In this document: in pieces, positions 1,722 through 27,230 of the stretch
How the letters are laid out: each line of letters starts with the position of its first letter
Numbering within the stretch: position 1 is the first letter of the stretch
Virus record (IMG/VR): IMGVR_UViG_3300035703_000008
Coordinates: 144,933 to 208,932 of that record
Strand: one strand, 5' to 3'
Length of the DNA stretch: 64,000 bases
The notes under the pieces: model-generated
What the model saw: only the letters and a program-made list of their open reading frames with translations
What the model was told of the DNA's origin: nothing
The model's database searches: none
Position numbers and translations under genes: made by a program

Positions 1722-3481
1722 TCCAGATCAAAGACCTTACAGTCAAAAACTTTATGAGCGTAGGCAATGCCACACAGGCCGTCAACTTTGATCGAAAAGA
1801 TCTCACCTTGGTACTGGGCGAAAACTTGGATCTCGGTGGCGATGGTAGCAGGAACGGCACGGGCAAAACCACAATCATCAATGCTCTTTCGTATGCCCTA
1901 TACGGACAAGCCTTGACTAACATCCGACGAGATAATCTCATCAACAAGACCAATGGCAAAAACATGTTGGTGAGTTTGGACTTCTCTGTGAACAGTCAGG
2001 ACTATCGTGTGGAACGAGGCCGTAAGCCAAACATCCTCAAATTTTATGTCAATTCAGAAGAAAAACAAGCGTCCGACGACAGCCAAGGTGACAGTCGTGA
2101 AACACAGGATGCCATAGAATCTGTGCTGGGTATGACGCACGATATGTTCCGGCATATCTTGGCCCTCAATACCTACACTGAACCATTCCTAAGCCTCAAG
2201 GCCAATGACCAGCGTGCCATCATCGAGCAACTGCTAGGTATCACGCTACTAAGTGAGCGTGCCGAAAAGATCAAAGAACTCAATCGTGCCACCCGAGATG
2301 CCATCGCACAAGAAGAATTCCGTATCCGTGCTGTGCAGGAAGCCAATGTCAGGATCGAAGAGCAGATCGTTAGTCTAGAAAAGCGCCGTGACCTTTGGCT
2401 ACGGAAACAACGAGAAGATTGTGCCAATCTAGAATCAGCTATATCCGCGCTGGAGCACATCGATATCGAAGCCGAAGTACAGGCACACCGAGATTTAGAA
2501 CTGTTCCACAGTCGCAAGAAACAGATCGACGAGCATCAGAAGTGGGTGCGACAAATCGATCTCGACGACGCCAAGCTAGAAAAAGATCAAGCCAAGCTAC
2601 AGCGAGACATTGATGCGCTGCGAGAACATCGTTGCCATGCCTGTGGACAAGAATTGCACGATAGCAAGCAAGACGAAATCCTGGCCGAGAAACAAAAGAA
2701 CTTGCAAGAGATCGTGCTGCAACTCTTGGCCAACAGCACCCAGAGGATCGAACATCTCAACGAGATCAGCGACCTTGGCGAACTTGGTGCAGCACCGCAG
2801 GTATTCTACGACGATCTTGAACAAGCACTGGGGCATAAAAACAGCATCGATGGCCTGCGTCGAGATCTTGCTAATCGACAGGCCGAAACTGATCCATACA
2901 CCGAACAAATCGCCGACATGCGCGGTCAAGCCTTGCAAGAGGTCACTTATGACACACTCAATGAACTCACAAGGGTACAGGAACACCAAGACTTCTTGCT
3001 CAAGCTCTTGACCAACAAGGATTCGTTTGTACGCAAGAAGATCATTGATCAGAATCTTTCTTATCTCAATGCCCGACTCACTCACTATCTAGATCGGATC
3101 GGTCTTCCGCACCAAGTGGCTTTCCAAAACGATCTCTCCGTGGAAATCACTGAACTGGGCAGGGATCTAGACTTTGACAACCTCAGTCGTGGCGAGCGTA
3201 ACCGTCTCATACTCTCCATGTCATGGGCATTCCGAGATGTTTGGGAAAGCCTGTATTCGCCCATCAATGTACTGTTCATCGACGAACTCATCGATTCGGG
3301 CATGGACACAGCCGGCATGGAATCCAGCCTAGCTCTTTTGAAGAAGATGAGCCGAGAAAGAAACAAAAGCATTTGGCTGGTGAGCCATCGCGACGAGTTG
3401 GCTGGGCGTGTAGGTAACATCCTGCGCGTGGTCAAAGAAAACGGTTTTACTTCCTATAACATAGACGTGGACATCGCATGA
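1718..3481 (+). CDS. gp46: recombination endonuclease ATPase subunit (T4 gp46 / SbcC-Rad50 family)
   Basis: KNFMSVG N-terminus, Walker A NGTGKTT, coiled coil with CHAC zinc hook, LSRGE signature, Walker B FIDE, VSH motif. Confidence 0.95.
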   Translation: MIQIKDLTVKNFMSVGNATQAVNFDRKDLTLVLGENLDLGGDGSRNGTGKTTIINALSYALYGQALTNIRRDNLINKTNGKNMLVSLDFSVNSQDYRVERGRKPNILKFYVNSEEKQASDDSQGDSRETQDAIESVLGMTHDMFRHILALNTYTEPFLSLKANDQRAIIEQLLGITLLSERAEKIKELNRATRDAIAQEEFRIRAVQEANVRIEEQIVSLEKRRDLWLRKQREDCANLESAISALEHIDIEAEVQAHRDLELFHSRKKQIDEHQKWVRQIDLDDAKLEKDQAKLQRDIDALREHRCHACGQELHDSKQDEILAEKQKNLQEIVLQLLANSTQRIEHLNEISDLGELGAAPQVFYDDLEQALGHKNSIDGLRRDLANRQAETDPYTEQIADMRGQALQEVTYDTLNELTRVQEHQDFLLKLLTNKDSFVRKKIIDQNLSYLNARLTHYLDRIGLPHQVAFQNDLSVEITELGRDLDFDNLSRGERNRLILSMSWAFRDVWESLYSPINVLFIDELIDSGMDTAGMESSLALLKKMSRERNKSIWLVSHRDELAGRVGNILRVVKENGFTSYNIDVDIA

Positions 3482-4041
3482 AATACATGATCACCGGTGG
3501 TAACTCAGGGCTAGGAGCCATACTATGTCAACGATTCGATGGCGACAGTTACAGTCGAGTCAATGGTTACGACATCGGCAAAGACTATCACAAACTCGCT
3601 GGCATCAGCATGGACTACGATGTGTTCATCAACAATGCCTATGACGGAGTACTAGGCGAGAGCTGGCATGGTGTTGGTCAGACACGCTTGCTACACGAAG
3701 TGGCCATGACATGGCAATGCCACAACAAAACCGGATTCATCATCAACATTGGTGGAGTAGGCAGTGAGGATTTGTCAGCACCGTTTCCTGGGTGGGAAAG
3801 CTATAATTCCAATAAACGAGCTCTCAAACACATGAGCTTACAGTGGACCCAGGCATTTAAAAACTCCCAAGTCAAGTTCCGCACGAGCTTGCTAACTATA
3901 GATCGACTGGATAAAAACAGCATCAACGACGGACACGATCTCAACAACATCGCTGATATGATTGAATTGTGTCTGAACGTTCGTGCCAACACCTGCATCG
4001 GAGAAATCAAGGCGTGGGTTAATTTGGATCATAAACAGTAA
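3478..4041 (+). CDS. short-chain dehydrogenase/reductase-like protein
   Basis: TGGNSGLG nucleotide-binding motif, FINNA, IINIG, YxxxK (YNSNK). Confidence 0.8.
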   Translation: MKYMITGGNSGLGAILCQRFDGDSYSRVNGYDIGKDYHKLAGISMDYDVFINNAYDGVLGESWHGVGQTRLLHEVAMTWQCHNKTGFIINIGGVGSEDLSAPFPGWESYNSNKRALKHMSLQWTQAFKNSQVKFRTSLLTIDRLDKNSINDGHDLNNIADMIELCLNVRANTCIGEIKAWVNLDHKQ

Positions 4042-5044: not shown

Positions 5045-6298
5045 ATGAACGTTGACAAAAGCACTTTCTGTGCTGCTCCTTGGTTCCAAATCAAAAATAC
5101 CACGCTTGGAAGTTACTGTAGCTGTTGCGAGATAGACCACGACAAAAGCACTTTCTCGGGCAACAAAGATTTCGCTTGGCCCACGCATCTACCATCGCAC
5201 TGGAACAACAGCGATTATGCTCGATACCTTAGGTCTGAGCTCACCAATGGTGTGCGTCTCCCCGAATGTCACAAGTGTTGGAGCAAAGAAGATGCTGGAC
5301 AACAAAGTCTTCGACAAACTATCAATGACACCGTGGCTGGCAATCGACCTTTTGAATCTAGTTGGATGCAATCCTACTTTAGAAAAAAGCAAGATTACGA
5401 ACATGATTTACTTTTGGCTGCCGATGTACAGGTCACCAATCTTTGCAACTTTGGCTGTGTGATGTGTGAGCCGGGTAGCAGCAGCCATCTCTATCGAAGA
5501 TGGCGGAGAGATCAGGACCATCCGTTGATAAAAAAACAGTTGATGATCTTCCCCAACGGCTATCTTGATCAGGTGAAAGAAACATACATCAACAGAAACA
5601 ACTACGAGCTACTGCAACACGTGATAGATCAATCTCCGCGGTACTTGAAGATCATAGGCGGTGAGCCTTTGTTGGATCAGCAGTTGATGTCTGTGTTGTG
5701 CAATCAGCTTCCCGAAGTCAAATCAAAAATCAAACTTTACATCACTACCAATGGGAGCCAAGATCTCTGCCACGCACAACAACGGTTGTCGGGTTACCAG
5801 GAAATTTTTTGGGTAGTCAGTCTAGAGTCCACGGGCAAACTGCAGGACTATGTGAGAAAAGGCAGCGTATGGTCCGAGATCGAGCACAACATTGACAGGT
5901 TTGTAAGCGAACACAGCAGTCAACACCTTTACATAGCCTATGTGATACAGAGTCTCACATTGGCTGGGCTGCCAACATTGTTGGAATGGGCCCAGCAACG
6001 CAACATTCCAGTGGCTACCAGTTTGCTGGCCAAACCTGAATTCATGGATGTTAGATCGTTGCCCACGGAGATGAAATCAAAGTTGATTGATCAATTGTCG
6101 CAGGCAACAAAGTATTCGATACCGCTGGAGATACAAAATCCAGCATCTGTCAATATTGCAGGGTTGTGCGAGCTCATCGGGCGCACCCAGTACGATAGAT
6201 CTGCCATGTTGGATCTACGAGAGTGGTTGGATTGGTACGATCCCGACCAGCAATGGCGAGACATCATTCCCGAGTGGGCACCATATTTCTCGGAGTAA
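5045..6298 (+). CDS. radical SAM protein with N-terminal Twitch/SPASM-like Cys cluster
   Basis: FCAAPW...CSCC...ECHKCW, then CNFGCVMC (CxxxCxxC), GGEPLL, TTNG. Confidence 0.85.
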   Translation: MNVDKSTFCAAPWFQIKNTTLGSYCSCCEIDHDKSTFSGNKDFAWPTHLPSHWNNSDYARYLRSELTNGVRLPECHKCWSKEDAGQQSLRQTINDTVAGNRPFESSWMQSYFRKKQDYEHDLLLAADVQVTNLCNFGCVMCEPGSSSHLYRRWRRDQDHPLIKKQLMIFPNGYLDQVKETYINRNNYELLQHVIDQSPRYLKIIGGEPLLDQQLMSVLCNQLPEVKSKIKLYITTNGSQDLCHAQQRLSGYQEIFWVVSLESTGKLQDYVRKGSVWSEIEHNIDRFVSEHSSQHLYIAYVIQSLTLAGLPTLLEWAQQRNIPVATSLLAKPEFMDVRSLPTEMKSKLIDQLSQATKYSIPLEIQNPASVNIAGLCELIGRTQYDRSAMLDLREWLDWYDPDQQWRDIIPEWAPYFSE

Positions 6299-6823
6299 TC
6301 AGTCATAGTCAACGAGACTGACCAGCGCGATACCTTGCTCGGTGACACGGCGTCGACCAGGCAAGAAATCTAGATTGGCGATCACGCCGGCTGCGAGATG
6401 ATCCACGGCAAAGTGTTGTCTCAAGATTGATGCCACAGCCAGCACGGTACCGCCAGTGGCGATCACGTCATCGACGATGAAAGGACGATCGCCGATCTGC
6501 GCTGATTGTTGAATTTCAATGGTGTCTGAGCTGTATTCAGTGTCGTAATCGGCTGAATATACAGCTCCGGGTAACTTGCCTTTTTTGCGAGCCAGCACCA
6601 AGGGAAATCCGTGTGTGCGTGCCAGGATAGCACCCATGACGAACCCACGGCTTTCAACAGCCACGATGCTGGTAGCACGATGTGCTTTCACATATTTTGA
6701 CATCTCGGTGCAGCAATGATCCAGCACATGTGGCGTGTTGAACACTTGATTGAGATCGAGGAAATCAACACCTTTTTTTGGCCAGTCTTTTACTGTGAGT
6801 ATGTTGTCTCTGATGTTGATCAT
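6299..6823 (-). CDS. apt: adenine phosphoribosyltransferase
   Basis: DWPKKGVDFLD, VESRGF, ARKKGKLPG, TEY and the PRPP motif IVDDVIATGGT; start placed at 6823 (ATGA overlap with the upstream stop). Confidence 0.92.
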   Translation of the reverse strand: MINIRDNILTVKDWPKKGVDFLDLNQVFNTPHVLDHCCTEMSKYVKAHRATSIVAVESRGFVMGAILARTHGFPLVLARKKGKLPGAVYSADYDTEYSSDTIEIQQSAQIGDRPFIVDDVIATGGTVLAVASILRQHFAVDHLAAGVIANLDFLPGRRRVTEQGIALVSLVDYD

Positions 6824-7152
6824 AGTTGGTCGGGCCAATCTCTGAAAAGTGCATGCTGGATGTCACCGGCAACAAACTGGTTGAAACTTTTGTGTTTGGT
6901 CTCGAGCTCGCCTTCTTGTGGCACCACTCTGCGGAAAGCATCATCCATTTGGGCCATGTTTTTGAACTCCATGAGGATCATCCATTCGGGCATGTCTGCG
7001 ATTGAGCGGAAGCCCATCTTGCAGCGTGTGATACGATAACTTTCCATCCGTCCTTCAGAGACCAAATGATCAAAGAAACTACGCATGCCGTTGACCCAGT
7101 CCAGGTCAGATATGTCGCCTTCTTTGTTGGCCCATATAGTGTAAAGATCCAT
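6820..7152 (-). CDS. hypothetical protein, DUF6614-like (by recall)
   Basis: 110 aa; YRITRCKMG...QMDDAF...ALFRDWPD resembles a small bacterial family of unknown function; coupled start/stop with both neighbours. Confidence 0.65.
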   Translation of the reverse strand: MDLYTIWANKEGDISDLDWVNGMRSFFDHLVSEGRMESYRITRCKMGFRSIADMPEWMILMEFKNMAQMDDAFRRVVPQEGELETKHKSFNQFVAGDIQHALFRDWPDQL

Positions 7153-8082: not shown

Positions 8083-8316
8083 TTAGAAAAACGGCAGTCC
8101 TGATTTTTTAGTGGTATCGAGATTTTCCTTGATGATACCATTGACTATGTCGCGATCGCTCCAGCTCATCTGCATGGCTTCGCTGATAGTGACGCCTCCG
8201 CGCATGAACCAACACAATTTCAGCGTCTCGGTCTTGATCGCTTTGGCCTCCTTTTCCAGTCGTTCTATGTACTTGACCACGCCCGCGGGGTCTAGGATCA
8301 GGAGGCGGCTTCGAAA
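8083..8316 (-). CDS. baseplate/tail assembly chaperone C-terminal extension (gp51-like), probably expressed by -1 frameshift
   Basis: -1 frame relative to the upstream gene, overlaps it across A-AAT-TTT-TTC, and has no evident RBS/start; content LCWFMRGGVTISEAMQMSWSDR. Confidence 0.65.
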   Translation of the reverse strand, partial: FRSRLLILDPAGVVKYIERLEKEAKAIKTETLKLCWFMRGGVTISEAMQMSWSDRDIVNGIIKENLDTTKKSGLPFF

Positions 8317-9134
8317 AAATTTGCCATGTCCAGGGTAAACTGTTGCTGGTACTCGTTGCTGCAAGCGGTACACTTCATCTTGAGCGGTTTCAGCTCGCCG
8401 GTTTCTTTCACGGCCACGATGTGATCTCGGATCTTGGCAAACATCTTGCGATCACAGTTGGCCAACCATTCGGCGATGTGCTCGGGATCCTCGACCTGTG
8501 CTGCAGGAGTCTGCACCAATCTGATGTTTTGTGCCAGAGCTTGGGTAGTGATCTCAGTGATCTTTTTCAGCATGGCTCCCATCTGTGCCAGTCGCTGCTG
8601 ATCTTCCATGTCAGCAGCACCAAGGGCCTGCAGGGTCTTTTGTTCTTCAAACTGGCGCATGCTGTTTTCATTGATCTGGCGATAGGTCATGGGCCGGAAA
8701 TACAGCTTGAGATCGCCCAGTTCCAGGAATTCGTCGTAGTCGGGCCGGCCAATGTTTTCCAGGATCTGACGCAGGTCCAGGGCGTAATCTTCTTCGTTTT
8801 CGCATTTGGGACAGCGTGTGGTGATCTCCATCTCATGACCGTAAGTGGCGATGCGTATGGCCGTGATCACGGTGTCGATGTCCATGCTGGGCATTTTCCA
8901 AGCATCTCGGATGTTGGGCACACAGCTTTGGATCACCGACGGCACCGCTGATCCGTTGAACAGGGCATCAGGTGTGCGATAAGTGATCTCGTCCAGGGTG
9001 GTCATGGGCATCACGGGATATTCGCCGTTGGCAGTGGGTTCCAACGCGCCTTCGGGATAGTAACGGCCATCGCTGGGCAGGCGGATATAGATCGCCGGTT
9101 GGCGGAAATACTGCTTGAGTGGGTTGTTTGGCAT
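8298..9134 (-). CDS. gp26: baseplate hub subunit / tail assembly chaperone (T4 gp26-like)
   Basis: NPLKQYFRQPAIYIRLPS, MTTLDE, AIRIATYG, two CxxC motifs, ends NFF; start moved to ATG 9134, downstream of TATAAATA. Confidence 0.75.
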   Translation of the reverse strand: MPNNPLKQYFRQPAIYIRLPSDGRYYPEGALEPTANGEYPVMPMTTLDEITYRTPDALFNGSAVPSVIQSCVPNIRDAWKMPSMDIDTVITAIRIATYGHEMEITTRCPKCENEEDYALDLRQILENIGRPDYDEFLELGDLKLYFRPMTYRQINENSMRQFEEQKTLQALGAADMEDQQRLAQMGAMLKKITEITTQALAQNIRLVQTPAAQVEDPEHIAEWLANCDRKMFAKIRDHIVAVKETGELKPLKMKCTACSNEYQQQFTLDMANFFEAAS

Positions 9135-9189: not shown

Positions 9190-12100
9190 GTGGATCAAGA
9201 ACTAGCACTTTTAATTGAACAACTGCGCGAGCTGACCCCGGCTCTGCGCAGCATGGGCGAGACCCAGGCCACGGCTTATACACGAGCCTCGGACCGCTTT
9301 GTGGCCAGCATGGCCAAAGTCGTGGCCAGCATGGAGAAAAGCAATCAAACACGGGCCCAGCAACAGCGAGCCACAGAAAAGTTCATTCGCGAAGTAGAAA
9401 AAGCCGCTGATGCCACCGAAGAATATCGCCAAGAACAAGAACGCCTGGCCCGTGAGCAAGAAGATGCTGCACGCGCCGCCGAAGAGCTGGCAGGTTCTCT
9501 AGATAGAGCCAGCCGCGCCAGCGATGCCGATCGAAATCGTGCAGCACTGCGCATGATGCGAGATCAGCGTCGTGCTCAATTTGATGATCAGAGAGAAGTT
9601 ACCGCGGGTCGGCTGTTTGACGAATTTGGCCGTGGTACCACTCTCATGGGTGCCGCACGCGAGGGCCTTGAGAATCTTGGAGGCACCAGCATTGGTGCCA
9701 CAGCAGGCCTACGCTTGTTCACTGCTGGTATAGAAGGTGCAGGCAAGGCCCTGCTCAGCTATGCCAAGGCCATGTACGACGGGGAACAAGGCGCGGCTGT
9801 TGCGGCCAAATCTGTGAAAGAATTCGCGGATACGGTCAGTAACGCGGCCATGGCCATTGGCACAGCCATGATGTTGATCCCGAAGTTGGGCATAGCCGCT
9901 CGCGTCGCTGGCGCGGCCGTGACGGCACTTGGCGGTGCAGCCAAACTTGGCGCCGAAGCCACAAAACTCGCGGCCGAACAAAGCGATCGTCTCTACAAAA
10001 ACTATCAGGTTCTCGGAAAATCCGGTGTGACCGCAGCCGATGGCATGATGGGCTTGGCCGAAGATGCGCAGCGTTTGGGTTATGGACTCAACGATGTTGA
10101 TCTTGCTGCATTCCAGCAGACCCTGGGTGGTGCCAGCAAAGATCTAGCCATGCTGTCAGGTTCGGCCGTGGACGGACGCCGGAGCTTTGCTCGGTTTTCG
10201 GGCGATATAACACGCAGCGAGCTTGGCGAATACTTCATGAATCTTGGCATGAGCGTGGACGAGATCAACGCAGGCACAGCAGGATTCGTCAAGCAACAGG
10301 TCAATCTTGGTCGTGCGCAAGGCATGACACAGGCACAGCTGACGCAAGGTGCTGTCAAGTATCTCAAAGAACTGGATGTGCTGACCAAGCTCACGGGCAT
10401 GCAAAAGCAAGAGCTTGAAGCGCAGATGGATTCCAACCGCAGGAACGAGAGATTCCGCGCAGCCATCGAAAAAGTGCGGGCCGAGCAAGGTGACGAAGCT
10501 GCTAGAAATCTCGAAATGAACATGGCCGTGGCCTCAGAGCGATTCCCTGGTCTGGCCAAAGGTCTCATGGATATCTCGGCGGGATTCGTCAACACCGAAG
10601 AAGCACAAAAAGTATTCCGCGCTGGCATGCAAGACGTGCCCATGCTGATGACCAAAGGACTGGGATCGGGCTTCCAGGAAATGGGGCAAGCCGCACAGAG
10701 AACCACAGATGCATTCGGGCATTTGGCAGCCGTGGGTGCCTACGGTGATGTGTTTGGCGACTATTATGAAAGCATGAAGGCCGCGGGCATGAGCAACGAG
10801 GATGCTGCCAAGCGTGCCCTAGAGTTGGCCGAGATACAGAAAAAACAAGGTGAAGGCGCTGACGCTGCTACCAAAGCACAGACTGAACTGCGACGCAGCC
10901 AGATGAACGCCAGGGACGACCTGCAAAACATGGTCAAAACTGGTGTGGTGTCTGCCACCAACGGCCTGAATTCGTTTGGAAAAGCCGCAGAAACCGTGGC
11001 CGATTCCATACGCAAGATGTTTGGCATCAAGACACCGGCATCAGAATTCAAAGGGCAAGTTGATCCAGAGCAGGTGAAAAAATCCCAGGAACAACTGGAG
11101 CTGGCCAAGAAGCGCAGTGAACTGGCTGACAAAAACCTAGCAGCAGCACGAGCTGAACTCGAAGAATTACAAAAGCAAAATGCCAGTTTTAGAAAAACGC
11201 GAGAAGCAAGGATCCGTGTATTCAAAGCACAGGAAGAACAGAGTCGCGCCCAGACTGCTCTAGCTGGTGCTACAAAAAGAGCCAGAGCAGCGGCACCGGC
11301 TGCTCAAGGAGCTCCAGGAGCTCCATCAGCTGGAGGAACTCCCTCACTCGGCACAACACCAGCACTTGGTACACCGTCTACTACACCGGCCACCGCCCCA
11401 AGCACTACCTCCCCAACCACTGGTGCAACACCTGCCGGAGGCCAGGACACAGCTGGAGCTACCGCTCCAACCAGCGACCTAGTACCCAAGCTGCTGGACT
11501 TTATTGGAAAAATAGAATCTCGCAACAACTACAACGTGTTAGTGGGAGGAAAAACCAAATCTGATCCAGCTCTCACAGACATGACCGTGGCACAGGTGCA
11601 AGAATTCCAGAGCAAGATGCTGGGCATGGGCCGAGAAAGCACAGCAGTGGGCAAATATCAGATCATCAGAAAAACCCTGGCTGGACTGATAGAAGAGGGA
11701 GTGGTCAAACCTTCGGACAAGTTTGATGCCGCTACCCAAGACAAGCTGGCCATAGCCTTGCTGGAACGTCGTGGGCTCAGAGACTATCAGTCGGGCAAGA
11801 TCAAACCCAACACGTTTGCCGACAACCTTGCCATGGAGTGGGCCAGTTTGCCTATGTCCAACAATCGCAGCTACTATGCTGACATTGGCAGCAACAAGAG
11901 CGGTGTTGATCGTGACGCTGTCATGCAAGTGATCGCTGCAGCCAAAGGTGGAGTAGCACAAGGGCCCAAGCTAGGGTATCCAGCTGTGCTACACGGTACC
12001 GAAGCTGTGGTACCTTTGCCTGATGGCAAACACATTCCAGTTGACATCAAAAACTTTGATATTCGAAAGATCATAGATTCTATGATGACTAAAAAATCCC

Positions 12101-12660
12101 GCGCATTGGGATTTGACAACAAGAATATCTCAGTTGATATCAAAAACTTTGATGTACAAAAAATCATGGATACCATGATGACCAAGTGGATGGATCCATC
12201 AGCTGTGCGACAACTACAGGGCAAGGACCGTGGGGATAAGTCAATAGAATCCAGCTTTGCCTATCTCATGGACAACTACGGAAAAGAGTCAAAGAATCTT
12301 GATCGTATCACAGAGTCGTTGTCCACGATGTTTGCTAGCATGCAAGATCGAGTGCTGCCAGAGATATCAAACTTAAAAGACAGCGTGTTTACTTCTATCG
12401 CAGACATGCGATCTCGTGAAATCGCAACCACGGGCACAGCCATCGATGATCAATTCTTGCAAGAACTGCGGGCAGTGAACAGAGAACTGCCCACAGCAGT
12501 AGAACGTGCGGTACGAACAGCCATGACTGACACACAACGGGCACAAGCTGATGTATCTGCGGCTGTGAAATCCCTGATCCCCGAACTGCAAACACAGACA
12601 CAGGTCTTGCAACGTCAGACATCAGTGAGCGAGCGTATATTACAGGCAGCACAAAACTAG
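9190..12660 (+). CDS. tape measure protein with lambda-R-like lysozyme domain
   Basis: 1156 aa, Ala/Gly/Gln-rich and helical; domain IGKIES..NY...TAVGKYQ...QDKLAIALL..RG...EWASLP; adjacent to the chaperone gene. Confidence 0.8.
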   Translation: MDQELALLIEQLRELTPALRSMGETQATAYTRASDRFVASMAKVVASMEKSNQTRAQQQRATEKFIREVEKAADATEEYRQEQERLAREQEDAARAAEELAGSLDRASRASDADRNRAALRMMRDQRRAQFDDQREVTAGRLFDEFGRGTTLMGAAREGLENLGGTSIGATAGLRLFTAGIEGAGKALLSYAKAMYDGEQGAAVAAKSVKEFADTVSNAAMAIGTAMMLIPKLGIAARVAGAAVTALGGAAKLGAEATKLAAEQSDRLYKNYQVLGKSGVTAADGMMGLAEDAQRLGYGLNDVDLAAFQQTLGGASKDLAMLSGSAVDGRRSFARFSGDITRSELGEYFMNLGMSVDEINAGTAGFVKQQVNLGRAQGMTQAQLTQGAVKYLKELDVLTKLTGMQKQELEAQMDSNRRNERFRAAIEKVRAEQGDEAARNLEMNMAVASERFPGLAKGLMDISAGFVNTEEAQKVFRAGMQDVPMLMTKGLGSGFQEMGQAAQRTTDAFGHLAAVGAYGDVFGDYYESMKAAGMSNEDAAKRALELAEIQKKQGEGADAATKAQTELRRSQMNARDDLQNMVKTGVVSATNGLNSFGKAAETVADSIRKMFGIKTPASEFKGQVDPEQVKKSQEQLELAKKRSELADKNLAAARAELEELQKQNASFRKTREARIRVFKAQEEQSRAQTALAGATKRARAAAPAAQGAPGAPSAGGTPSLGTTPALGTPSTTPATAPSTTSPTTGATPAGGQDTAGATAPTSDLVPKLLDFIGKIESRNNYNVLVGGKTKSDPALTDMTVAQVQEFQSKMLGMGRESTAVGKYQIIRKTLAGLIEEGVVKPSDKFDAATQDKLAIALLERRGLRDYQSGKIKPNTFADNLAMEWASLPMSNNRSYYADIGSNKSGVDRDAVMQVIAAAKGGVAQGPKLGYPAVLHGTEAVVPLPDGKHIPVDIKNFDIRKIIDSMMTKKSRALGFDNKNISVDIKNFDVQKIMDTMMTKWMDPSAVRQLQGKDRGDKSIESSFAYLMDNYGKESKNLDRITESLSTMFASMQDRVLPEISNLKDSVFTSIADMRSREIATTGTAIDDQFLQELRAVNRELPTAVERAVRTAMTDTQRAQADVSAAVKSLIPELQTQTQVLQRQTSVSERILQAAQN

Positions 12661-12673
12661 GGTTAAATATCGT

Positions 12674-14464
12674 ATGGGTTGGAAAAAATACTTCAAGGTA
12701 GCAAATGCCAATGGTGAGCTGAGTCCGCTTTCGGGATCAACTGCACAGGGTCTGCCCGGCTATGGGCGCAACAACGGTGCAGATCCCATGACCGGGCATG
12801 CTAATGTGGTGTACCGCAACTATGCCAGCCAACTGCCTGAAGTCTATTCAGGACACCCCAATCGTATTGAAAGATACAATCAATACGAAAACATGGACAC
12901 CGATTCAGAGATCAATGCCTGTCTGGATATCATATCAGAATTTTCCACCCAGGTCGATGAGCAAACTGGTGTGCCTTTCCGTGTCAGCTACAACGAGCAG
13001 CCCACTGACAGCGAAGTAGAAATCATCAAAAAACAGCTCAAGCAATGGGTCAAGCTCAACAAGCTAGATCAGCGCATATTCAAGCTGTTCCGTAACACAC
13101 TCAAGTACGGAGACCAGGTCTTTGTGCGCGACCCAGAAACATTTGAGATGTACTGGGTAGACATGACCAAGGTCAGTCGAGTGATCGTCAACGAAAGCGA
13201 GGGCAAAAGACCCGAGCAGTATGTGATCCGAGACATCAACCCCAACTTCCAGAATCTCACGATCGCAGCCAAGACCACATCAGATTATCAGAGCAATCCT
13301 CCCAGCTCGGGTTATGTGGGTCAGTTCAACTACACAGCGCCGCAGTCCAATGTGCCAGGTGGTAGTGCTGGCCAGAGCCGATTCTCAGCGGCTATGAACG
13401 AAGCCGTGTTGGATGCCAAGCATGTGGTGCACATCAGCCTCAGCGAAGGACTGGACTTTTTCTGGCCGTTTGGGCAGAGCATACTTGATGTGATCTATCG
13501 TGTTTTCAAGCAGAAAGAACTGCTAGAAGATGCGGTGCTGATCTATCGCGTGAGTCGTGCTCCTGAGCGCCGGGTATTCAAGATTGACGTGGGCAACATG
13601 CCTAGCCACATGGCCATGAGCTTTGTGGAGCGTGTTAAAAACGAGATCCATCAGCGCAGGATACCCAGCCATACCGGGGGTGGAGATGGTCGACACATCA
13701 TGGATTCGGGCTACAACCCACTTAGTATCAACGAAGACTACTTTTTCCCACAGACCGCAGACGGTCGTGGTTCCAGCGTAGAAACACTGCCCGGCGGGTC
13801 AAATCTCGGCGAGATCGACGACCTCAAGTACTTCAACAACAAGATGTGCCGCGGTCTGCGTGTGCCTTCCAGCTATCTGCCCACCGGACCCGACGACAGC
13901 GACCGCCCCATGAACGATGGACGTGTGGGCACAGCGCTCATCCAGGAGTATCGTTTCAATCAATACTGCGAGCGTCTACAGCGTCTAGTGGTACAAAAGC
14001 TCGACGACGAGTTCAAGATGTTCATGCGTTGGCGTGGCCTCAACATTGATTCGGGTCTGTTCAATCTTGAATTTTGCCCCCCGCAAAACTTTGCCAGCTA
14101 TCGCGAAGCCGAGTTGGATACCACTCGTGTGAGCACTTTCCAAAGCCTTGATGGTGTACCTTATTTCAGCAAGAGATTCTTGCTCAAACGCTATCTTGGA
14201 CTCACTGAAGAAGAGATCACAGAAAACGAGACCATGTGGTTGGAAGAGCGCAGCAAACCAGACATGCCGGGTGCTACTGGACAGGATCTGCGATCTGTGG
14301 GCATCAATCCTGCCGATCTCGAGTCTGATATCACAACCGGTGAAGAGTTGTCAGATCTTTCCATAGGTGCACCAGGAGAGATTGGTGCTGGAGAACCAGG
14401 CACCACCGGAGCCAGCCCAGGACAACAGCCAGGTGCGGCCGTGACTCCCCCGCCAGCCGCATAA
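12674..14464 (+). CDS. gp20: portal vertex protein
   Basis: LEDAVLIYRVSRAPERRVFKIDVGNMP, EDYFFP, VETLPGG.NLGEIDDLKYF. Confidence 0.96.
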   Translation: MGWKKYFKVANANGELSPLSGSTAQGLPGYGRNNGADPMTGHANVVYRNYASQLPEVYSGHPNRIERYNQYENMDTDSEINACLDIISEFSTQVDEQTGVPFRVSYNEQPTDSEVEIIKKQLKQWVKLNKLDQRIFKLFRNTLKYGDQVFVRDPETFEMYWVDMTKVSRVIVNESEGKRPEQYVIRDINPNFQNLTIAAKTTSDYQSNPPSSGYVGQFNYTAPQSNVPGGSAGQSRFSAAMNEAVLDAKHVVHISLSEGLDFFWPFGQSILDVIYRVFKQKELLEDAVLIYRVSRAPERRVFKIDVGNMPSHMAMSFVERVKNEIHQRRIPSHTGGGDGRHIMDSGYNPLSINEDYFFPQTADGRGSSVETLPGGSNLGEIDDLKYFNNKMCRGLRVPSSYLPTGPDDSDRPMNDGRVGTALIQEYRFNQYCERLQRLVVQKLDDEFKMFMRWRGLNIDSGLFNLEFCPPQNFASYREAELDTTRVSTFQSLDGVPYFSKRFLLKRYLGLTEEEITENETMWLEERSKPDMPGATGQDLRSVGINPADLESDITTGEELSDLSIGAPGEIGAGEPGTTGASPGQQPGAAVTPPPAA

Positions 14465-22824: not shown

Positions 22825-24903
22825 ATGTCAATCAACAAAATTTCAGGAAATATACTGCAGGACAATCTGCAGCGTGGATCTAATCTCACTTTCCAGACTG
22901 ATCTTTTGGTCGTTGATGTGGTCAATCAACGGATTGGTGTAAACACTGCTGCTACTACCCATGTTCTCACCGTGGGTGGAAATATTTCAGCCGGCAACAT
23001 CGATGCAGCCAATGTTGTTGTCATTGACGGAGTGTTTGCTAACACCGTCAACATTGTTGGTAATTCGGTGTTTGACGGTGTTACGATATCGGGCAACTCT
23101 ATATCGGCTGCATCAGGACGCCTTGAACTTGGCAGTGCAGCCAACATCGAAATACTGGGCGGAAGCCTAGGATTTGTTCTTACCACAGACGGAGCTGGAA
23201 ATCTTGATTGGACCAGCACATCTAACATCACTGGCGTGCTGGGTAATCTAGTAGATCTTGGCACACCATCGGCGGGAAATCTCGTCAGTAATGCAGTAAC
23301 TTTGACAGCGAATACATCAGTGACCGACGGCATAGCACAACTCAACGTGATACTCGGCAAGCTGGTACCTCCAGCTCCACCAGCCTTTCCTGGATCAAGT
23401 TCCCTTTCGATTACTACATCTACCACATCGGCTCGCATGTGTTTGGGGTTTACTCAACCTGACAACACGCCTGGCGCCAACAAAGCAGTAGCAGCTGGTA
23501 CTTTGGTGTCGGTGATACGTGGCAGTTCTTATTCAACCAATACTATTTCCAATACCGGACCAGGAGATTCAGGCACATTGACCCTGTACCTCAATGGCAC
23601 AGGTGCTGGCAATGTTACCTTCAACTCGGGAGCTAATCCCACTGCCAATGGTACCTACAGCAACCTTGTAGTCACCAACAACTATGACTACAACGTGGCC
23701 AATGCCAACATCGCTTCAGGTTTCTGGTATGTGTTTTCAGCTCGCGGCGCAGGCACAGTGACTTCGGGCTGGAACGAAGTTGGAATGACTCACAGCGGTG
23801 CTGGGTCAACAAATACGCCATCCTGGTATTATGACAACTCTACTGTGGCAGCCCCACAGTTTACAAACACCTCGATAGCTCCAACTTCCAACAGTTTCAG
23901 CTATACCAGCACCATACCGCACTACACTTCGAGTACTCAGTTTACCATTGGGTTTGACGTGAATCGCCTGTCAGCGAACATGTATCCCAATTCCAACAAT
24001 CTCACATCAACCACCGCAGCAGGAGGTAGTTTTGCTGCCCCGGCCGCGATAACCTATGCTGCAGCCGGCATATCCACGCCCTTGGCACAGAATCTCTATG
24101 CCAACACCGGAGCAGTTACAGCTTCGACAACCGTGTCCGTCACTACCGGGTTTGGATCTAGCAGCACAGGGCCTTCGATATCGGTGACCAATAGCTACAA
24201 CACCGGATCAAATACCTTCAGTCCCGGTGCAACAGTGCTGAGAAAAACAGGTACAGCCACAGCCGTTGACGAAGGCAACGTGGTGGTCACTAATGTGGGA
24301 ACTGGATCAGGCAACGCCGTGCGTATAGCGAACCCAGGCAGTGGAAACACGCCGGCTTACACAGCCAGCGCTACCGCATTTGACAGTCAAAACGGCCCTT
24401 TGCAGACCTATGATGCTGTGGTGGTTGGATCAGGCAGCCAAGGTGTGCTGAGACATGACCAGACCAATTACAGTACAGGATATCTTCCTGTGGGCCCTGA
24501 TCTGTCTGTGGGACGCAGTGGCACACAGTATTTCACCATCAAGTTTGTTCGCACCGATGTCAGCAAGTTTGACATACGCTATTCGGGCAACGTGGCCGGA
24601 ATGTGGGTGGCCCTTCCTGGATCAGCCATAGATTCGAGCTCGGGCGCCAATGGCTGGATAGACATGACTGTGGCCTATGCTGGCAGTGGATACCCTGGCG
24701 TGAACGCACCCGGCAACGGCAGCGATGGTTGCAGCCTAGGTGGTGTTGTACAAGTGAATACCACGGTGGCCAATGCCAGCAAGACCTGTACGTTTGGTAC
24801 AGTGTCTAGTTCCGGCACAGCTACCAATGAAATCTATGTGAGAATCGCACTCACATCCGGTCAGAGTGTCACGGCTCTGTCATTACAACAGGCGACTAAC
24901 TGA
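22825..24903 (+). CDS. tail fibre / virion structural protein
   Basis: 692 aa, S/T/G/N-rich; RIGVNT and VLTTDGAGNLDW fibre motifs. Confidence 0.75.
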   Translation: MSINKISGNILQDNLQRGSNLTFQTDLLVVDVVNQRIGVNTAATTHVLTVGGNISAGNIDAANVVVIDGVFANTVNIVGNSVFDGVTISGNSISAASGRLELGSAANIEILGGSLGFVLTTDGAGNLDWTSTSNITGVLGNLVDLGTPSAGNLVSNAVTLTANTSVTDGIAQLNVILGKLVPPAPPAFPGSSSLSITTSTTSARMCLGFTQPDNTPGANKAVAAGTLVSVIRGSSYSTNTISNTGPGDSGTLTLYLNGTGAGNVTFNSGANPTANGTYSNLVVTNNYDYNVANANIASGFWYVFSARGAGTVTSGWNEVGMTHSGAGSTNTPSWYYDNSTVAAPQFTNTSIAPTSNSFSYTSTIPHYTSSTQFTIGFDVNRLSANMYPNSNNLTSTTAAGGSFAAPAAITYAAAGISTPLAQNLYANTGAVTASTTVSVTTGFGSSSTGPSISVTNSYNTGSNTFSPGATVLRKTGTATAVDEGNVVVTNVGTGSGNAVRIANPGSGNTPAYTASATAFDSQNGPLQTYDAVVVGSGSQGVLRHDQTNYSTGYLPVGPDLSVGRSGTQYFTIKFVRTDVSKFDIRYSGNVAGMWVALPGSAIDSSSGANGWIDMTVAYAGSGYPGVNAPGNGSDGCSLGGVVQVNTTVANASKTCTFGTVSSSGTATNEIYVRIALTSGQSVTALSLQQATN

Positions 24904-27230
24904 TGGCCGTATCTCTAGCTCAATACGTTGATCTGCTGTTCAAGAAGCTGCAAGGTGTAGCCAAAACAGCCAATGCCACGGTCAAAGGAGCCAGCAACGA
25001 AAGCATCGCCAGTCCCCCGCTGCTGCGTGGCGACATCATTTGGATGGACAGCGATCAGATACCTGGAACAGCACAGGCATTGGCCAATATCGCACAAGCC
25101 TACACCGGAGCCAATGCTGTCGAATGCGTGGCCGACACTACGGTACCGCCCATTGGTGGAGTGAGACCAACTTGGTTGACAAATCTTGACTATTGGATAC
25201 CTCAAGAGTTTGGATCCACATGGCTGCCCAAGATCTATGTTGATAGTCCGGGTGTGGCCAACGTTGAAGCCACGGGCACTCAGATTTTTGCAGCAGGTAT
25301 TGGTGGTGCCGGCGAGTACTACTTTGACACACAAGCTGGTGTGCTCAATTTCATTGGTGAGACCATACCTTCTACCTTGACCTCGGGCAAGGTGATCTAT
25401 GTGTCGGGTTACCGATATGTGGGCGCAGTGGGCATCAACAGTGGATCCGGTAATGTCAATCTAGCTAACCTGCGTGTGGCCAACACCACGATCACCACCG
25501 ATGGCACGATTGGTAACATCGTGCTTGAGCCCACAGGCAACGGTATAGCAATCATTGACACCACCACAGGACTCCTGGTACCTGTGGGTAACACAGCTCA
25601 ACAACCTGTGCCGGCCAGTACAGGAACCATACGATTCAATTCAGAAACAGTGGTCTTGGAAGTCTATGACGGCAACAGCTGGGTGCCTGCTGGCGGATCG
25701 ACATTTAATATCAGCAATCAGACCATCAATCCCGACGGCATCACGGATACTTTTGTTTTGAATTATGATGCCACTGACGACACGGTATTGGTCACCATCA
25801 ACGGCATCATGCAGACACCGGCAGTGTCATACAGCATCACTGGTAATTCGATCACATTTGCTGAGATACCCGAACCCACAGACACGGTACAAATAAGATA
25901 TATCTCGGCCACTGAAACTGTGACGTTTATTGACAATGTGTCGGGCAATGCTTTGGTTCGTACAGAAACATCCGGGGATGTCACGATACTTTCTACAGGA
26001 ACCATTGACCTCACGGGCAACCTACTGCCATCGGCCAACATCACGTATTCCTTGGGCAACACTGATCTGCGTTGGAGCGATCTCTGGCTGTCGGGCAACA
26101 CCCTGGTGCTTGGCAATATCGTGGTCAAAAATACCACGGGCAATGTCATTGGGTTTTTTGGTCCCGATGGCGTTACCCCAGCCACACTTGATGCCAATGC
26201 CGAAATCGTCAGCGATGCCATAGCCAGCGGTACCAGCGAGATTGACTTTGCTGCACCCAACGGTAACATACAAGCTACTGTGGGCGGATCCACAGTGGCA
26301 GTGATATCAACGTCGGGCATCACGATCACCGGTGATATCACTGCTGGAAACTATGTTGGGAACGGTAGCCAACTCACTGATATAGTAGTCAGCTCTGTAC
26401 CAGCAGCCAATGTCATTGGCCTGGCCAATGTGGCAACCTCTGGCGACTACACCGATCTTATCAATACGCCCACGATACCCACTCACACGTCAAATCTCGT
26501 CAATGATTCGGGATTTATAACCACAGCCACTGCCAATGTGATATCTGTGAATGGTCAGTCAGGTGTGGTCACTATTGCCACTTATGGCAACACTGATGTA
26601 GCCAACTATCTGCCCACGTATTCAGGAAACATTGGCGGAACGTTGACCACAGCCGGTCAGCCCAATATCACTGCTGTGGGTACGTTGGGGTCGTTGACAG
26701 TGACTGGCAATATCACCGGCGGTAACATGTCAGTGTCAACGGGTTCGATCACTGTGGGCAATGTCATCAATGCCAACGGTAACGGTGTGGGAAATATTGG
26801 ATCGAGCTCTAATTATTTTGACACCATATTTGCACGAGCCACATCTGCACAATATGCCGACGTGGCAGAAAAATTCATCAGCGATCAGGTGTATTCACCA
26901 GGCACTGTGTTAGTGTTTGGTGGATCCCAGCAAGTCACACTATGTGATCGTTACGCCGATCCCAGGGCCGCTGGCATAGTTTCCACTGATCCAGCCTATC
27001 TCATGAATAGCGGAGCATCCGGAATCACAGTGGATCTAGCACTTACCGGTCAGGTCCCTTGTTTGGTAGTGGGCCCTGTGAGCAAAGGCGATATCCTGAC
27101 CACTTCAGACTTGCCAGGGTATGCATGCCGATTGGAGTCTGAGCACTGGCGCCCGGGCGTGATCATAGGCAAAGCTCTGGAAAGCTGCAGAAGCGGACAT
27201 CATCGTATATTGGTATTTGTTTGTCGATGA
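24903..27230 (+). CDS. tail fibre protein with C-terminal intramolecular-chaperone (peptidase G2-like) domain
   Basis: GN repeats; C-terminal ATSAQYADVAE...GIVST.P.Y.MN...GQVPC.V.GPV.KGD...IGKAL. Confidence 0.8.
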   Translation: MAVSLAQYVDLLFKKLQGVAKTANATVKGASNESIASPPLLRGDIIWMDSDQIPGTAQALANIAQAYTGANAVECVADTTVPPIGGVRPTWLTNLDYWIPQEFGSTWLPKIYVDSPGVANVEATGTQIFAAGIGGAGEYYFDTQAGVLNFIGETIPSTLTSGKVIYVSGYRYVGAVGINSGSGNVNLANLRVANTTITTDGTIGNIVLEPTGNGIAIIDTTTGLLVPVGNTAQQPVPASTGTIRFNSETVVLEVYDGNSWVPAGGSTFNISNQTINPDGITDTFVLNYDATDDTVLVTINGIMQTPAVSYSITGNSITFAEIPEPTDTVQIRYISATETVTFIDNVSGNALVRTETSGDVTILSTGTIDLTGNLLPSANITYSLGNTDLRWSDLWLSGNTLVLGNIVVKNTTGNVIGFFGPDGVTPATLDANAEIVSDAIASGTSEIDFAAPNGNIQATVGGSTVAVISTSGITITGDITAGNYVGNGSQLTDIVVSSVPAANVIGLANVATSGDYTDLINTPTIPTHTSNLVNDSGFITTATANVISVNGQSGVVTIATYGNTDVANYLPTYSGNIGGTLTTAGQPNITAVGTLGSLTVTGNITGGNMSVSTGSITVGNVINANGNGVGNIGSSSNYFDTIFARATSAQYADVAEKFISDQVYSPGTVLVFGGSQQVTLCDRYADPRAAGIVSTDPAYLMNSGASGITVDLALTGQVPCLVVGPVSKGDILTTSDLPGYACRLESEHWRPGVIIGKALESCRSGHHRILVFVCR

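Follow-up and report, generated by a model that had tools for sequence, protein, structure and literature searches.

A conserved slippery heptamer very probably yields a short and a gp51-like long form of a baseplate-hub assembly chaperone from one gene of a T4-related giant phage

The gp26-like locus and its -1 frame

We examined a 64,000-nucleotide stretch of IMG/VR virus record IMGVR_UViG_3300035703_000008 (positions 144,933 to 208,932; here, the window), which encodes a T4-type portal, a sheath, two tube proteins, and a large terminase, and which therefore places the locus among the morphogenesis genes of a T4-type virion module. The features of the locus, in window coordinates, are as follows.

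8298..9134, minus strand: gp26-like baseplate-hub assembly gene in the 0 frame, with its ATG at 9134 and its stop at 8300-8298 (278 aa); the protein has two CxxC pairs (CPKC, CTAC) and ends FFEAAS
8313..8319, minus strand: slippery heptamer U_UUU_UUC in X_XXY_YYZ phase, the proposed -1 shift site
8316..8322, minus strand: second in-phase heptamer, A_AAU_UUU, overlapping the first
8083..8313, minus strand: -1 frame extension of 76 codons plus a TAA at 8085-8083 (RSRLL...CWFMRGG...TTKKSGLPFF)
8278..8280, minus strand: GTG at -1 codon 12, the only canonical start candidate for an independent small ORF
8246..8306, minus strand: possible long-range stem pairing GCCUCCU (8306-8300, beginning 6 nt after the heptamer) with AGGAGGC (8252-8246)
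9190..12660, plus strand: divergently transcribed gene for a 1,156-aa protein, probably a tape measure protein (TMP) carrying a lysozyme-like domain
12674..14464, plus strand: T4-type portal (gp20; PF07230, E 2e-100)

The gp26-like protein matched Pfam PF12322 (T4_baseplate) at 59.8 bits against a cutoff of 24.5 (E 4e-16) and phrog_150 ("baseplate hub") at E 4e-18 over profile positions 4 to 233 of 282, and it is thus a member of the gp26/gp51 family. The 0 frame ends GAC ATG GCA AAT TTT TTC GAA GCC GCC TCC TGA. After a slip, the -1 frame would read CGA (8313-8311) onward as RSRLLILDPAGVVKY...GLPFF, so that the predicted products are 278 aa and 274 + 76 = 350 aa. The -1 segment contains no ATG. 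A blastn search of the locus against phage records found no match, and neither Pfam nor PHROGs returned a hit for the extension of the window.

The identification of the neighboring gene as a TMP rests on several indirect observations. Its protein-language-model look-alikes are TMP_3 and PhageMin_Tail families with SLT or lysozyme domains (score, 0.90 to 0.92), and it matched the lysozyme region of phrog_430 (E 4e-6). The syntenic RaK2 ORF088, with which it shares only weak similarity (pairwise E 0.001), is annotated as TMP-like, and the gene in the same position in CBB, CBB_251, encodes an abundant virion protein (PMC5259590). No similarity to T4 gp29 was found. The order portal, TMP-like gene, gp26-like gene was shared with Phosso, 121Q, RaK2, Hallingskeid, and two further contigs (L095 and L097), although in Atu_ph07 the predicted TMP is 15 genes away.

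Conservation of the slippery site and the extension

The first-pass annotation had noted two overlapping slippery heptamers at the end of the gp26-like gene and a -1 frame that remains open to 8083, and this observation was confirmed. It had also named loss of the slippery site or of the -1 register in homologs as grounds for rejecting a frameshift, and we found the opposite. The in-phase T_TTT_TTC was present in 69 of 69 distinct related sequences (IMG/VR and window sequences), which is far beyond chance. The codon before it varied (AAT, AGT, GAT, ACT, or CGT) but always ended in T. In contrast, A_AAT_TTT was present in only 31 of the 69 and is not the conserved signal. It is important to note that FF is also conserved as amino acids in most family members, T4 included, such that part of the nucleotide conservation is protein constraint, although the invariant third base of the preceding codon across five codons goes beyond it. 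Among 11 non-split paralog tails or junctions, the heptamer occurred in only 2. U_UU.U_UU.C is among the efficient -1 motifs in Escherichia coli (PMC4066793).

The same signal, followed by a -1 extension of 57 to 80 aa, was present in all 19 split isolates that we inspected. These comprised 13 jumbo isolates from at least six named genera, including RaK2, 121Q, and Atu_ph07, and 6 T4-like phages (S-WAM1, S-SM2, MED4-213, Vibrio K491, OLIVR5, and LPCS28), among them cyanophages and a Vibrio phage annotated like the vibriophages with short gp51. Contigs from the likely source sample and from a ∼3% divergent relative in another sample showed no indel in the T run, indicating that the split is not an assembly error.

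The -1 frame behaved as coding sequence from the shift site onward. The extension was 76 aa in nearly all clade members, with no stops in 69 sequences. The pN/pS ratio was 0.62 for codons 6 to 18, which lie beyond the 0-frame stop and before the frequent Met at codon 19, compared with 1.07 and 1.27 (with 46 and 107 stops) in the other frames. For codons 20 to 76 it was 0.32, and across these tests the other frames gave about 1.1 to 1.4 with many stops. Independent initiation, for instance at the GTG, had likewise been put forward as an observation that would count against a frameshift. The position of the first possible start codon ranged from 5 to 19 among relatives, so that no start is conserved; initiation itself was not measured. 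The absence of an evident ribosome-binding site, which the first-pass annotation had cited, is weak evidence, because the two starts that we read in this genome (9134 and 8080) also lack a Shine-Dalgarno sequence.

In other lineages, the extension is fused in frame to the gp26-like domain. Nineteen of the top 150 homologs of the extension were proteins of 319 to 351 aa that carry it at the C terminus of a PF12322 domain, and these aligned with no gap at the junction (LDFSANF-RSRII against LDMANFF-RSRLL). One 349-aa protein (P0075) that looked like a fusion has only a miscalled N-terminal extension. In 5 of 5 contigs encoding a fusion, a short gp26-like paralog sits immediately upstream, so that these lineages also encode a short and a long form, and the heptamer was absent from all five fusion junctions. 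However, one clade (L006) has both an extra short paralog and the frameshift gene, so replacement of the frameshift by two genes is not a clean rule. The AF2 model of a fused homolog (P0139) is one compact unit (pLDDT, 95; pTM, 0.92), in which the domain equivalent to the extension is predicted to be helical (two long helices and two short ones), with pLDDT above 90 over most of it.

We also searched for an element that might stimulate frameshifting. RNAalifold on the 69 sequences found no consensus structure, and the fold of the window itself had a z score of -0.85. At least 6 of the 7 pairs of the GCCUCCU/AGGAGGC stem formed in 28 of 69 relatives, and in essentially no shifted register, but the stem was absent in 41 of 69 and showed no covariation. 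It holds in a subclade only and is unproven as a stimulator, and no such element is established.

Relationship to T4 gp26 and gp51 and to tail assembly chaperones

T4 gp51 is a paralog of gp26 with a C-terminal tail: PF12322 matched residues 1 to 201 of gp51 (E 3.9e-52) and also matched gp26 (E 8.8e-64), and phrog_150 covers gp51 to its end but covers the gp26-like protein of the window only to profile position 233 of 282. The extensions of S-WAM1, OLIVR5, and LPCS28 matched phrog_634 ("baseplate hub assembly catalyst") at E 1.9e-30, 5.5e-8, and 3.5e-10, respectively, and BLASTP of the S-WAM1 extension against gp51 residues 207 to 244 gave E 3e-5. The gp51-like tail is thus present in cyanophage, vibriophage, and other T4-like extensions. 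For the window, a single polypeptide is inferred from the frameshift signal and the fused homologs, and homology of its extension to the gp51 tail is not statistically established. The extension profile compared with whole T4 gp51 or with gp51-type tails gave hhalign probabilities of 2 to 4%, there was no phrog_634 hit, the fused-protein profile against the single T4 gp51 sequence found only a zinc-ribbon match, and PDB sequence searches with both profiles found nothing; whether the window encodes a gp51-type long form is therefore left undecided by these tests. The extension of the window belongs to a different, unnamed sequence cluster, and Rak2-like extensions fall in phrog_18291 ("unknown function").

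Both systems have a short form ending just after FF and a long form with a C-terminal tail of ∼50 to 76 aa. T4, however, encodes the two forms as diverged, divergently transcribed genes, has no slippery site (TTC TTT), and has gp25 directly after gp26, whereas here one gene would give both forms with an identical 274-aa N terminus. In T4, both proteins are listed as hub assembly chaperones, and gp51 is stated to be absent from the particle (PMC3004832). The "short gp51" of cyanophages and marine vibriophages (Sullivan et al. 2010, PMC3037559) is the same genomic object: a small ORF just after gp26, in the -1 frame, preceded by NNT TTT TTC, one codon, and a stop (S-WAM1, S-SM2, MED4-213, and Vibrio K491). 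It was described as a gp51 lacking its first ∼200 residues, and no frameshift was proposed.

Likeness to the lambda gpG/gpGT and P2 E/E+E' tail assembly chaperones (TACs) is a functional analogy, and homology to G/GT is unproven. Both use a -1 slip, proposed in the present case, at a heptamer a few codons before the stop of a tail-morphogenesis chaperone gene, give nested short and long products, lie beside the (probable) tape measure gene, and are conserved despite low sequence similarity. The literature states that this frameshift is conserved in long-tailed phages "except T4" (PMC5009743). By sequence, the protein was placed in no known TAC family, as only PF12322 was hit. The structural comparison with tail assembly chaperones suggested by the first-pass annotation gave the HK97 chaperone 2ob9 as the best realigned PDB match (Z 5.2; 98/107 residues), but at only Z 3.9 and rank 36 in the unbiased search, with a Foldseek probability of 0.33; this weak similarity does not settle whether the fold is shared. 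Foldseek against PDB and the Swiss-Prot AFDB gave no significant hit, and the unbiased VIA search returned only generic helix-loop-helix matches to the C-terminal domain (Z 5 to 5.8). The gene is not upstream of and co-oriented with the probable TMP gene, as in lambda, but diverges from it, and the extension is 76 aa. A complex prediction with the N-terminal domain, the tube protein, and the extension scored 0.32 against a mark of 0.34, which is not evidence either way, and binding to tape measure or tube protein was not assayed. The only indirect hints on virion content are the absence of T4 gp51 from particles and of the gp26-like protein CBB_250 from the published CBB virion list.

Proposed mechanism and alternative explanations

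We propose, with high confidence, that ribosomes translating the gp26-like gene reach U_UUU_UUC four codons before the stop, where a fraction slip back one base as the two tRNA-Phe re-pair on UUU UUU. Ribosomes that do not slip would terminate and give the 278-aa protein, the equivalent of T4 gp26, and those that slip would give the 350-aa protein, the same domain plus a small helical C-terminal domain, the equivalent of T4 gp51. In this view, both forms act as nonstructural assembly chaperones for the central hub and tape measure complex, paralleling T4 gp26 and gp51 and, in logic, lambda gpG and gpGT. Our analysis shows the signal and its phase, its invariance across relatives, the coding character of the -1 frame upstream of any start, the colinear fusions in other lineages, the paralogy of T4 gp26 and gp51, and the gp51-like nature of the extension in cyanophage and vibriophage relatives. 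That the slip is ribosomal, its efficiency, the homology of the window's own extension to the gp51 tail, the chaperone role, and the binding partners are inferences; no transframe protein or junction peptide has been observed, and there were no RNA, ribosome, or proteome data for this virus.

The interpretation in the first-pass annotation, a programmed -1 frameshift fusing the gp26-like gene to the downstream ORF, is supported, with about as much comparative support as sequence alone can give. Its description of a gp26/gp51-type pair proved apt, and its equation of the pair with G/GT holds as an analogy only, the TMP-like neighbor being adjacent but divergently transcribed. Its statement that the frameshift is not usually annotated is correct, as none of the annotated records inspected has a joined or slippage CDS. 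Literature searches on gp26, gp51, the baseplate hub, and frameshifting found no description of this recoding.

We consider it unlikely that there are two separate genes, with the small ORF translated from the GTG at 8280 in the window, or by termination-reinitiation elsewhere, to give a free ∼60- to 75-aa "short gp51" that binds gp26 noncovalently. Every annotated record inspected implies this arrangement (for example, "baseplate hub assembly catalyst" in S-SM2, MED4-213, K491, and OLIVR5), and a -1 register is also the usual register of overlapping coupled genes. Further, Phosso, Atu_ph07, and 121Q have an ATG overlapping the stop (ATGA or TAATG) that would allow coupled reinitiation there, most window-clade members have Met at -1 codon 19, and the lack of a Shine-Dalgarno sequence is not informative in this genome. 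However, the window has Leu at codon 19 and Ser where others have the overlapping Met, the residues before any start are conserved (RxRLL...) in a frame that is never interrupted, and this model does not explain the invariant T before TTT TTC. Moreover, fused homologs are colinear right from the slip site, and tblastn matches to the cyanophage extension mostly begin at residue 1 after the slip.

Transcriptional slippage, in which RNA polymerase adds one extra U in the T6 run (T7 in Xoo-sp13 and RAS14), would give an identical protein (...NFFRSR...) and also appears unlikely. The conserved element is a homopolymeric T run, selection for the T before TTT also lengthens it, no downstream stimulatory structure is conserved, and runs of U or A cause slippage (PMC4066793, PMC5009743). 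Slippage was not assayed, as only DNA contigs were examined. Six Ts is short for efficient polymerase slippage, programmed cases typically using 9 or more, and the motif is exactly a canonical, efficient ribosomal heptamer in the correct phase. The run stops at C in 69 of 69 sequences, although that C is also fixed by the -1 Arg codon. An artifact or a decaying gene, whether from a homopolymer sequencing or assembly error or from a recent frameshift mutation in a single 350-aa gene, could be suspected because in-frame fusions exist and homopolymer runs are error-prone. This is effectively refuted by the same split, with the same T count, in 69 distinct metagenomic sequences and 19 independently sequenced isolates, by the absence of indels in two samples, and by the nonslippery junctions of the fused genes.

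A broader reading is possible but tentative: that the gp26-to-gp51 frameshift is a widespread, possibly ancestral, state across the T4-related phages (cyanophages, KVP40-like vibriophages, Pootjesviridae, and Rak2-, PA5oct-, and Atu_ph07-like jumbo phages). Genes 26 and 51 of T4, and the tandem short and long genes in some marine lineages, would then be resolved versions of one recoded gene. In a tree of the N-terminal domains, frameshift and two-gene states were interleaved, needing at least 3 to 4 changes, and because T4 sits on a very long branch, we claim no direction of evolution. If this reading is correct, the frameshift would be the long-missing counterpart of lambda G/GT in the one phage group said to lack it, implying that a fixed ratio of short to long tape measure/hub chaperone is a universal requirement of long-tail assembly.

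The frameshift would correct the annotation of hundreds of phage genomes, as 545 records carry the cyanophage-type extension, in addition to the Rak2-like jumbo phages and more than 4,000 metagenomic homologs, in which the extension is called a separate hypothetical protein, a "truncated gp51," or nothing at all. It makes the question of whether T4-type phages have a G/GT-like two-form chaperone directly testable in culturable phages. It would also explain why the gp51 of cyanophages and marine vibriophages lacks about 200 residues, and would tie T4 gp51, an essential protein of unknown mechanism, to gp26 as the long form of one chaperone.

The gp26-like gene and its -1 extension

We examined the minus strand of the window and found a 278-aa ORF that ends GAC ATG GCA AAT TTT TTC GAA GCC GCC TCC TGA and is followed by an open -1 frame. 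The features of the locus are as follows.

8298-9134, minus strand: gp26-like ORF of 278 aa, from the ATG at 9134 to the TGA at 8300-8298
8316-8322, minus strand: heptamer A_AAT_TTT in X_XXY_YYZ phase
8313-8319, minus strand: heptamer T_TTT_TTC in X_XXY_YYZ phase
8083-8313, minus strand: -1 frame, from CGA (8313-8311) through 76 codons to the TAA at 8085-8083
8278-8280, minus strand: GTG at -1 codon 12, the first canonical start in the -1 segment, which has no ATG
8300-8306 and 8246-8252, minus strand: GCCUCCU and AGGAGGC, arms of a possible stem starting 6 nt after the heptamer T_TTT_TTC
9190-12660, plus strand: divergently transcribed gene for a 1156-aa probable tape measure protein

The ORF matches Pfam PF12322 T4_baseplate (E 4e-16) and phrog_150 "baseplate hub" (E 4e-18), although the phrog_150 match covers only profile positions 4-233 of 282. 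After a -1 slip the frame reads RSRLLILDPAGVVKY...CWFMRGG...TTKKSGLPFF. The observation made in the first-pass annotation therefore held, including its predicted products of 278 aa and 350 aa. Its argument from the lack of an RBS carries little weight, because the two starts read here (9134 and 8080, minus strand) both lack a Shine-Dalgarno sequence; the host or phage probably uses SD-independent initiation, which weakens RBS-based arguments in this genome.

The window lies in a 208,932-bp IMG/VR virus record, about 60% complete, that contains a single PF12322 gene and likely derives from a subsurface metagenome. It carries a T4-type portal, a tail sheath, two tube proteins, a large terminase, and fibre-like giant ORFs. 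A 2119-aa ORF (27387-33746, plus strand) and a 775-aa ORF (24903-27230, plus strand) share a C-terminal module (phrog_22593; tail-fibre-like phrog_19602) and are probably fibre or receptor-binding proteins with a common tip. Two radical-SAM domain proteins (phrog_14086; 5045-6298 and 56188-57339, plus strand) are encoded among the structural genes, and a homing endonuclease (phrog_655, E 4e-40; 48298-49041, plus strand) is inserted in the tail-gene region, a little downstream of the tube genes. A phosphoribosyltransferase (6299-6838, minus strand) and a DUF6614 protein (6820-7152, minus strand) lie just downstream of the gp26-like operon. The nearest isolates by protein similarity are jumbo myoviruses, namely, Phosso, Atu_ph07, and the Rak2-like phages.

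The 1156-aa divergent neighbour has no Pfam hit and shows no similarity to T4 gp29, but several lines of evidence indicate that it is probably a tape measure protein. It has a lysozyme- or transglycosylase-like region (residues ∼798-894; phrog_430, E 4e-6) and a Thr/Pro/Ala-rich linker around residues 718-761, and its protein-language-model look-alikes are tape-measure families with SLT or lysozyme domains. It is weakly similar (pairwise E 0.001) to RaK2 ORF088, which is itself annotated TMP-like. Further, the CBB gene in the same position, CBB_251, is an abundant virion protein, whereas the gp26-like CBB_250 is not in the virion list (PMC5259590). The first-pass statement that the locus abuts the tape measure gene is thus probable, although the two genes diverge.

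Conservation of the signal and of the -1 reading frame

The first-pass annotation had named conservation of the heptamer and of the -1 overlap in homologs as a test of its proposal. Two IMG/VR scans plus the window yielded 85 related loci whose extension is 76 aa, giving 69 distinct DNA sequences at 53-68% protein identity, plus more distant ones. All 69 have TTTTTTC in phase, usually four codons before the stop (one codon in the loci L010/L011 and L088). The preceding codon is AAT (31), AGT (30), GAT (3), ACT (3), or CGT (2), such that the amino acid varies but the third base is always T. The 0-frame stop varies among TGA, TAA, and TAG, while the overlapping -1 Leu codon (CTG, CTA, or TTA) is kept, and the extension is 76 aa in nearly all sequences. 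Contigs from the likely source sample and from a ∼3% divergent relative in another sample show no indel in the T run.

We also inspected 13 jumbo isolates: Phosso, Atu_ph07, Xoo-sp13, RAS14, 121Q, RaK2, Hallingskeid, GAP32, CBB, XbC2, Serratia BF, Munch, and the Wroclawvirus phage Cassandra. All have in-phase T_TTT_TTC, or T_TTT_TTT in Xoo-sp13 and RAS14, and each has a 69-80 aa -1 ORF. None of the annotated records inspected annotates slippage. In RaK2 (positions 3245-3608 of record L093) and in Synechococcus phage S-WAM1 (positions 1376-1565 of record L107), the stretch holding the -1 extension is left entirely unannotated. In the Rak2-like phages the small ORFs form phrog_18291 "unknown function," whose profile begins at residue 13 of the extension.

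To examine whether the -1 frame is translated from the slip site, we compared the three frames across the 69 sequences. The -1 frame has no stop anywhere. For codons 6-18, which lie beyond the 0-frame stop and upstream of the frequent Met at codon 19, pN/pS is 0.62, while the same nucleotides in the other two frames give 1.07 and 1.27, with 46 and 107 stops; codons 20-76 give 0.32. The first ATG, GTG, or TTG falls at codon 5, 6, 7, 12, 14, 15, 16, or 19, depending on the sequence, and no initiator is conserved. The window has Leu at codon 19, and Ser where Phosso, Atu_ph07, and 121Q have a Met overlapping the stop. The peptide just after the slip is conserved across distant phages (FFR-S-RLLILDP in the window, FFR-M-RLLSTDDP in Phosso, and FFR-T-RLLISKPEE in Hallingskeid).

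An exhaustive HMMER search with the 76-aa segment found 200 representatives at E <= 1e-3, and 19 of the best 150 are 319-351 aa proteins with the segment at the C terminus. All eight that we scanned carry PF12322 at the N terminus. Their junction aligns without a gap with the predicted transframe junction (LDFSANF-RSRII and LDWSSSF-RSRIL against LDMANFF-RSRLL), but the junction DNA is not slippery (AAT TTT AGA, AGT TTC AGA, CAC TTT TAT, CAA TTC AGA, and GAA TTT AAA). In 5 of 5 contigs encoding such a fusion, a short gp26-like paralog (276-330 aa) lies immediately upstream in tandem, and where enough flank is available, the portal and TMP-like synteny is the same. Those lineages therefore also encode one short and one long form. 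In one of these metagenomic contigs (L095, positions 1-709), the T4-type portal gene appears to be interrupted by an intein with an HNH domain (PF14890 and PF13392, within a 963-aa product). Among the six short-paralog tails and five fusion junctions, an in-phase slippery heptamer occurs only twice, and both are followed by an early -1 stop.

One clade, L006, at 50% identity to the window, complicates this picture because it has an extra tandem short paralog (L006:1657-2478) upstream of a gene that still carries the frameshift signal. This paralog lacks the FF motif and ends LNLSNNE, and up to three gp26-type products are therefore possible there. On a maximum-likelihood tree of N-domains, the frameshift and two-gene states are interleaved, requiring at least 3-4 changes. 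T4 sits on a very long branch, so we draw no direction of evolution from this tree.

Relationship to T4 gp51 and predicted structure

T4 gp26 (208 aa) ends GAG TTC TTT GAG TTA CTA TAA; it has no slippery site, gene 25 overlaps its stop, and gene 51 is the divergent neighbour. T4 gp51 (249 aa) matches PF12322 at E 3.9e-52 over residues 1-201 and then has a ∼48-aa tail, whereas gp26 matches the same model over residues 1-206 with no tail. In addition, phrog_150 covers gp51 residues 3-248 (profile positions 13-280). Thus, gp51 is a gp26 paralog with a C-terminal extension. T4 also annotates an internal-start product, 26' (positions 5803-6090 of the T4 record L004), comprising the C-terminal 95 aa of gp26, and so makes nested products from this gene family by a different mechanism.

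In six T4-like phages (Synechococcus phages S-WAM1 and S-SM2, Prochlorococcus phage MED4-213, Vibrio phage K491, Agrobacterium phage OLIVR5, and Cronobacter phage LPCS28), the gp26 gene ends NNT TTT TTC, then one or two codons and a stop, and a 57-65 aa -1 extension follows. Extensions were tested against the gp51 tail as listed here.

Matches of -1 extensions from T4-like phages (extension; E value against phrog_634 "baseplate hub assembly catalyst"; other matches)
S-WAM1; 1.9e-30; phrog_150 positions 236-276 and BLASTP versus gp51 207-244, E 3e-5
OLIVR5; 5.5e-8; none
LPCS28; 3.5e-10; BLASTP versus gp51 201-244, E 0.004

A tblastn search with the S-WAM1 extension found 545 phage records (Synechococcus, 378; Cyanophage, 61; Vibrio, 52; Prochlorococcus, 24; and others), and most matches start at the first residue after the slip. 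In contrast, T4, Aeromonas avDM7, and Acinetobacter 3014 lack the signal, and in these gp25 follows gp26 directly. T4 and Acinetobacter 3014 carry a separate gene 51 as the divergent neighbour, while the divergent neighbour in avDM7 is annotated only as hypothetical. Sullivan et al. noted in 2010 that cyanophage and marine vibriophage gp51 is only about 20% of the T4 length and lacks the first ∼200 residues, without mention of a frameshift (PMC3037559); the frameshift would supply the missing N-terminal domain.

It is important to note that for the window's own extension, the link to the gp51 tail is positional and architectural only. The extension attaches at the same point, after the same heptamer, is similar in size and helical, and shares an S/P-x-x-E/D-R motif. 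However, hhalign gives E 0.011 at a probability of 3.9%, and there is no phrog_634 hit, which leaves undecided whether the window's long form ends in a gp51-type tail. The Rak2-like extensions fall in phrog_18291 "unknown function."

AlphaFold2 on P0139, a fused homolog, with a 53-row alignment gave pLDDT 95 and pTM 0.92. The extension is predicted to be helical, with two long helices (residues 276-304 and 318-338) and two short ones (263-272 and 310-313), within a single confidently placed unit. BFVD and AFDB-cluster matches are "baseplate hub assembly" proteins of many large myoviruses. A structural comparison with tail assembly chaperones had been proposed in advance as a check; Foldseek against the PDB found nothing significant, and on re-alignment of its candidates the best match was the HK97 tail assembly chaperone 2ob9 (Z 5.2, 98 of 107 residues). 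In the unbiased search this match drops to Z 3.9, behind generic helix-loop-helix matches to the C-domain, and it is a lead, not evidence of a shared fold. A complex prediction with the N-domain, the tube protein, and the extension returned no answer and is not used as evidence.

Mechanism and comparison with known systems

U_UU.U_UU.C is among the efficient -1 heptamers in E. coli and is used by IS elements (PMC4066793). No conserved stimulator was found among the 69 sequences, for which RNAalifold gives no consensus. The stem pairing GCCUCCU with AGGAGGC forms in the window and in 27 other sequences, and in essentially no shifted register, but it shows no covariation and is absent in 41 of 69. 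FF is conserved as protein even in T4, so part of the TTT TTC conservation is amino-acid constraint. The invariant preceding T, and the loss of the motif where the genes are fused or unsplit (apart from the two in-phase heptamers followed by an early stop), are the parts that point to selection at the nucleotide level.

What the sequences show is a real, deeply conserved recoding signal; the mechanism is inferred from it, and the most likely explanation, which we hold with good though not full confidence, is a programmed -1 ribosomal frameshift giving a gp26-like short form and a gp51-like long form. Independent translation of the small ORF is unlikely, given that no initiator is conserved and that codons upstream of the frequent Met are under constraint, although Phosso, Atu_ph07, and 121Q do have a Met overlapping the stop. 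Transcriptional slippage on the T6 run would give the same protein and, with no RNA data existing for this virus, is not excluded, but we also consider it unlikely. An artefact is very improbable, as no indel appears in the T run in the two samples and the same signal recurs in the isolates.

T4 gp26 and gp51 are listed as hub assembly chaperones, and gp51 is required for assembly but absent from the particle (PMC3004832). Lambda G/GT is the classic -1 frameshift that sets the ratio of two chaperone forms, which bind the tape measure and the tube protein, and it is said to be conserved in long-tailed phages "except T4" (PMC5009743). The first-pass interpretation of a frameshifted gp26/gp51-type pair is supported, while its likeness to G/GT is a functional analogy only: the present system works like G/GT in logic but is a member of the gp26/gp51 family and not of a known TAC family. 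We found no paper describing it, in a search that did not extend to subscription literature. Programmed -1 frameshifting of a chaperone gene is already established in lambda, and its apparent use by a gp26/gp51-family gene is of substantial interest for phage recoding, T4 hub assembly, and genome annotation.
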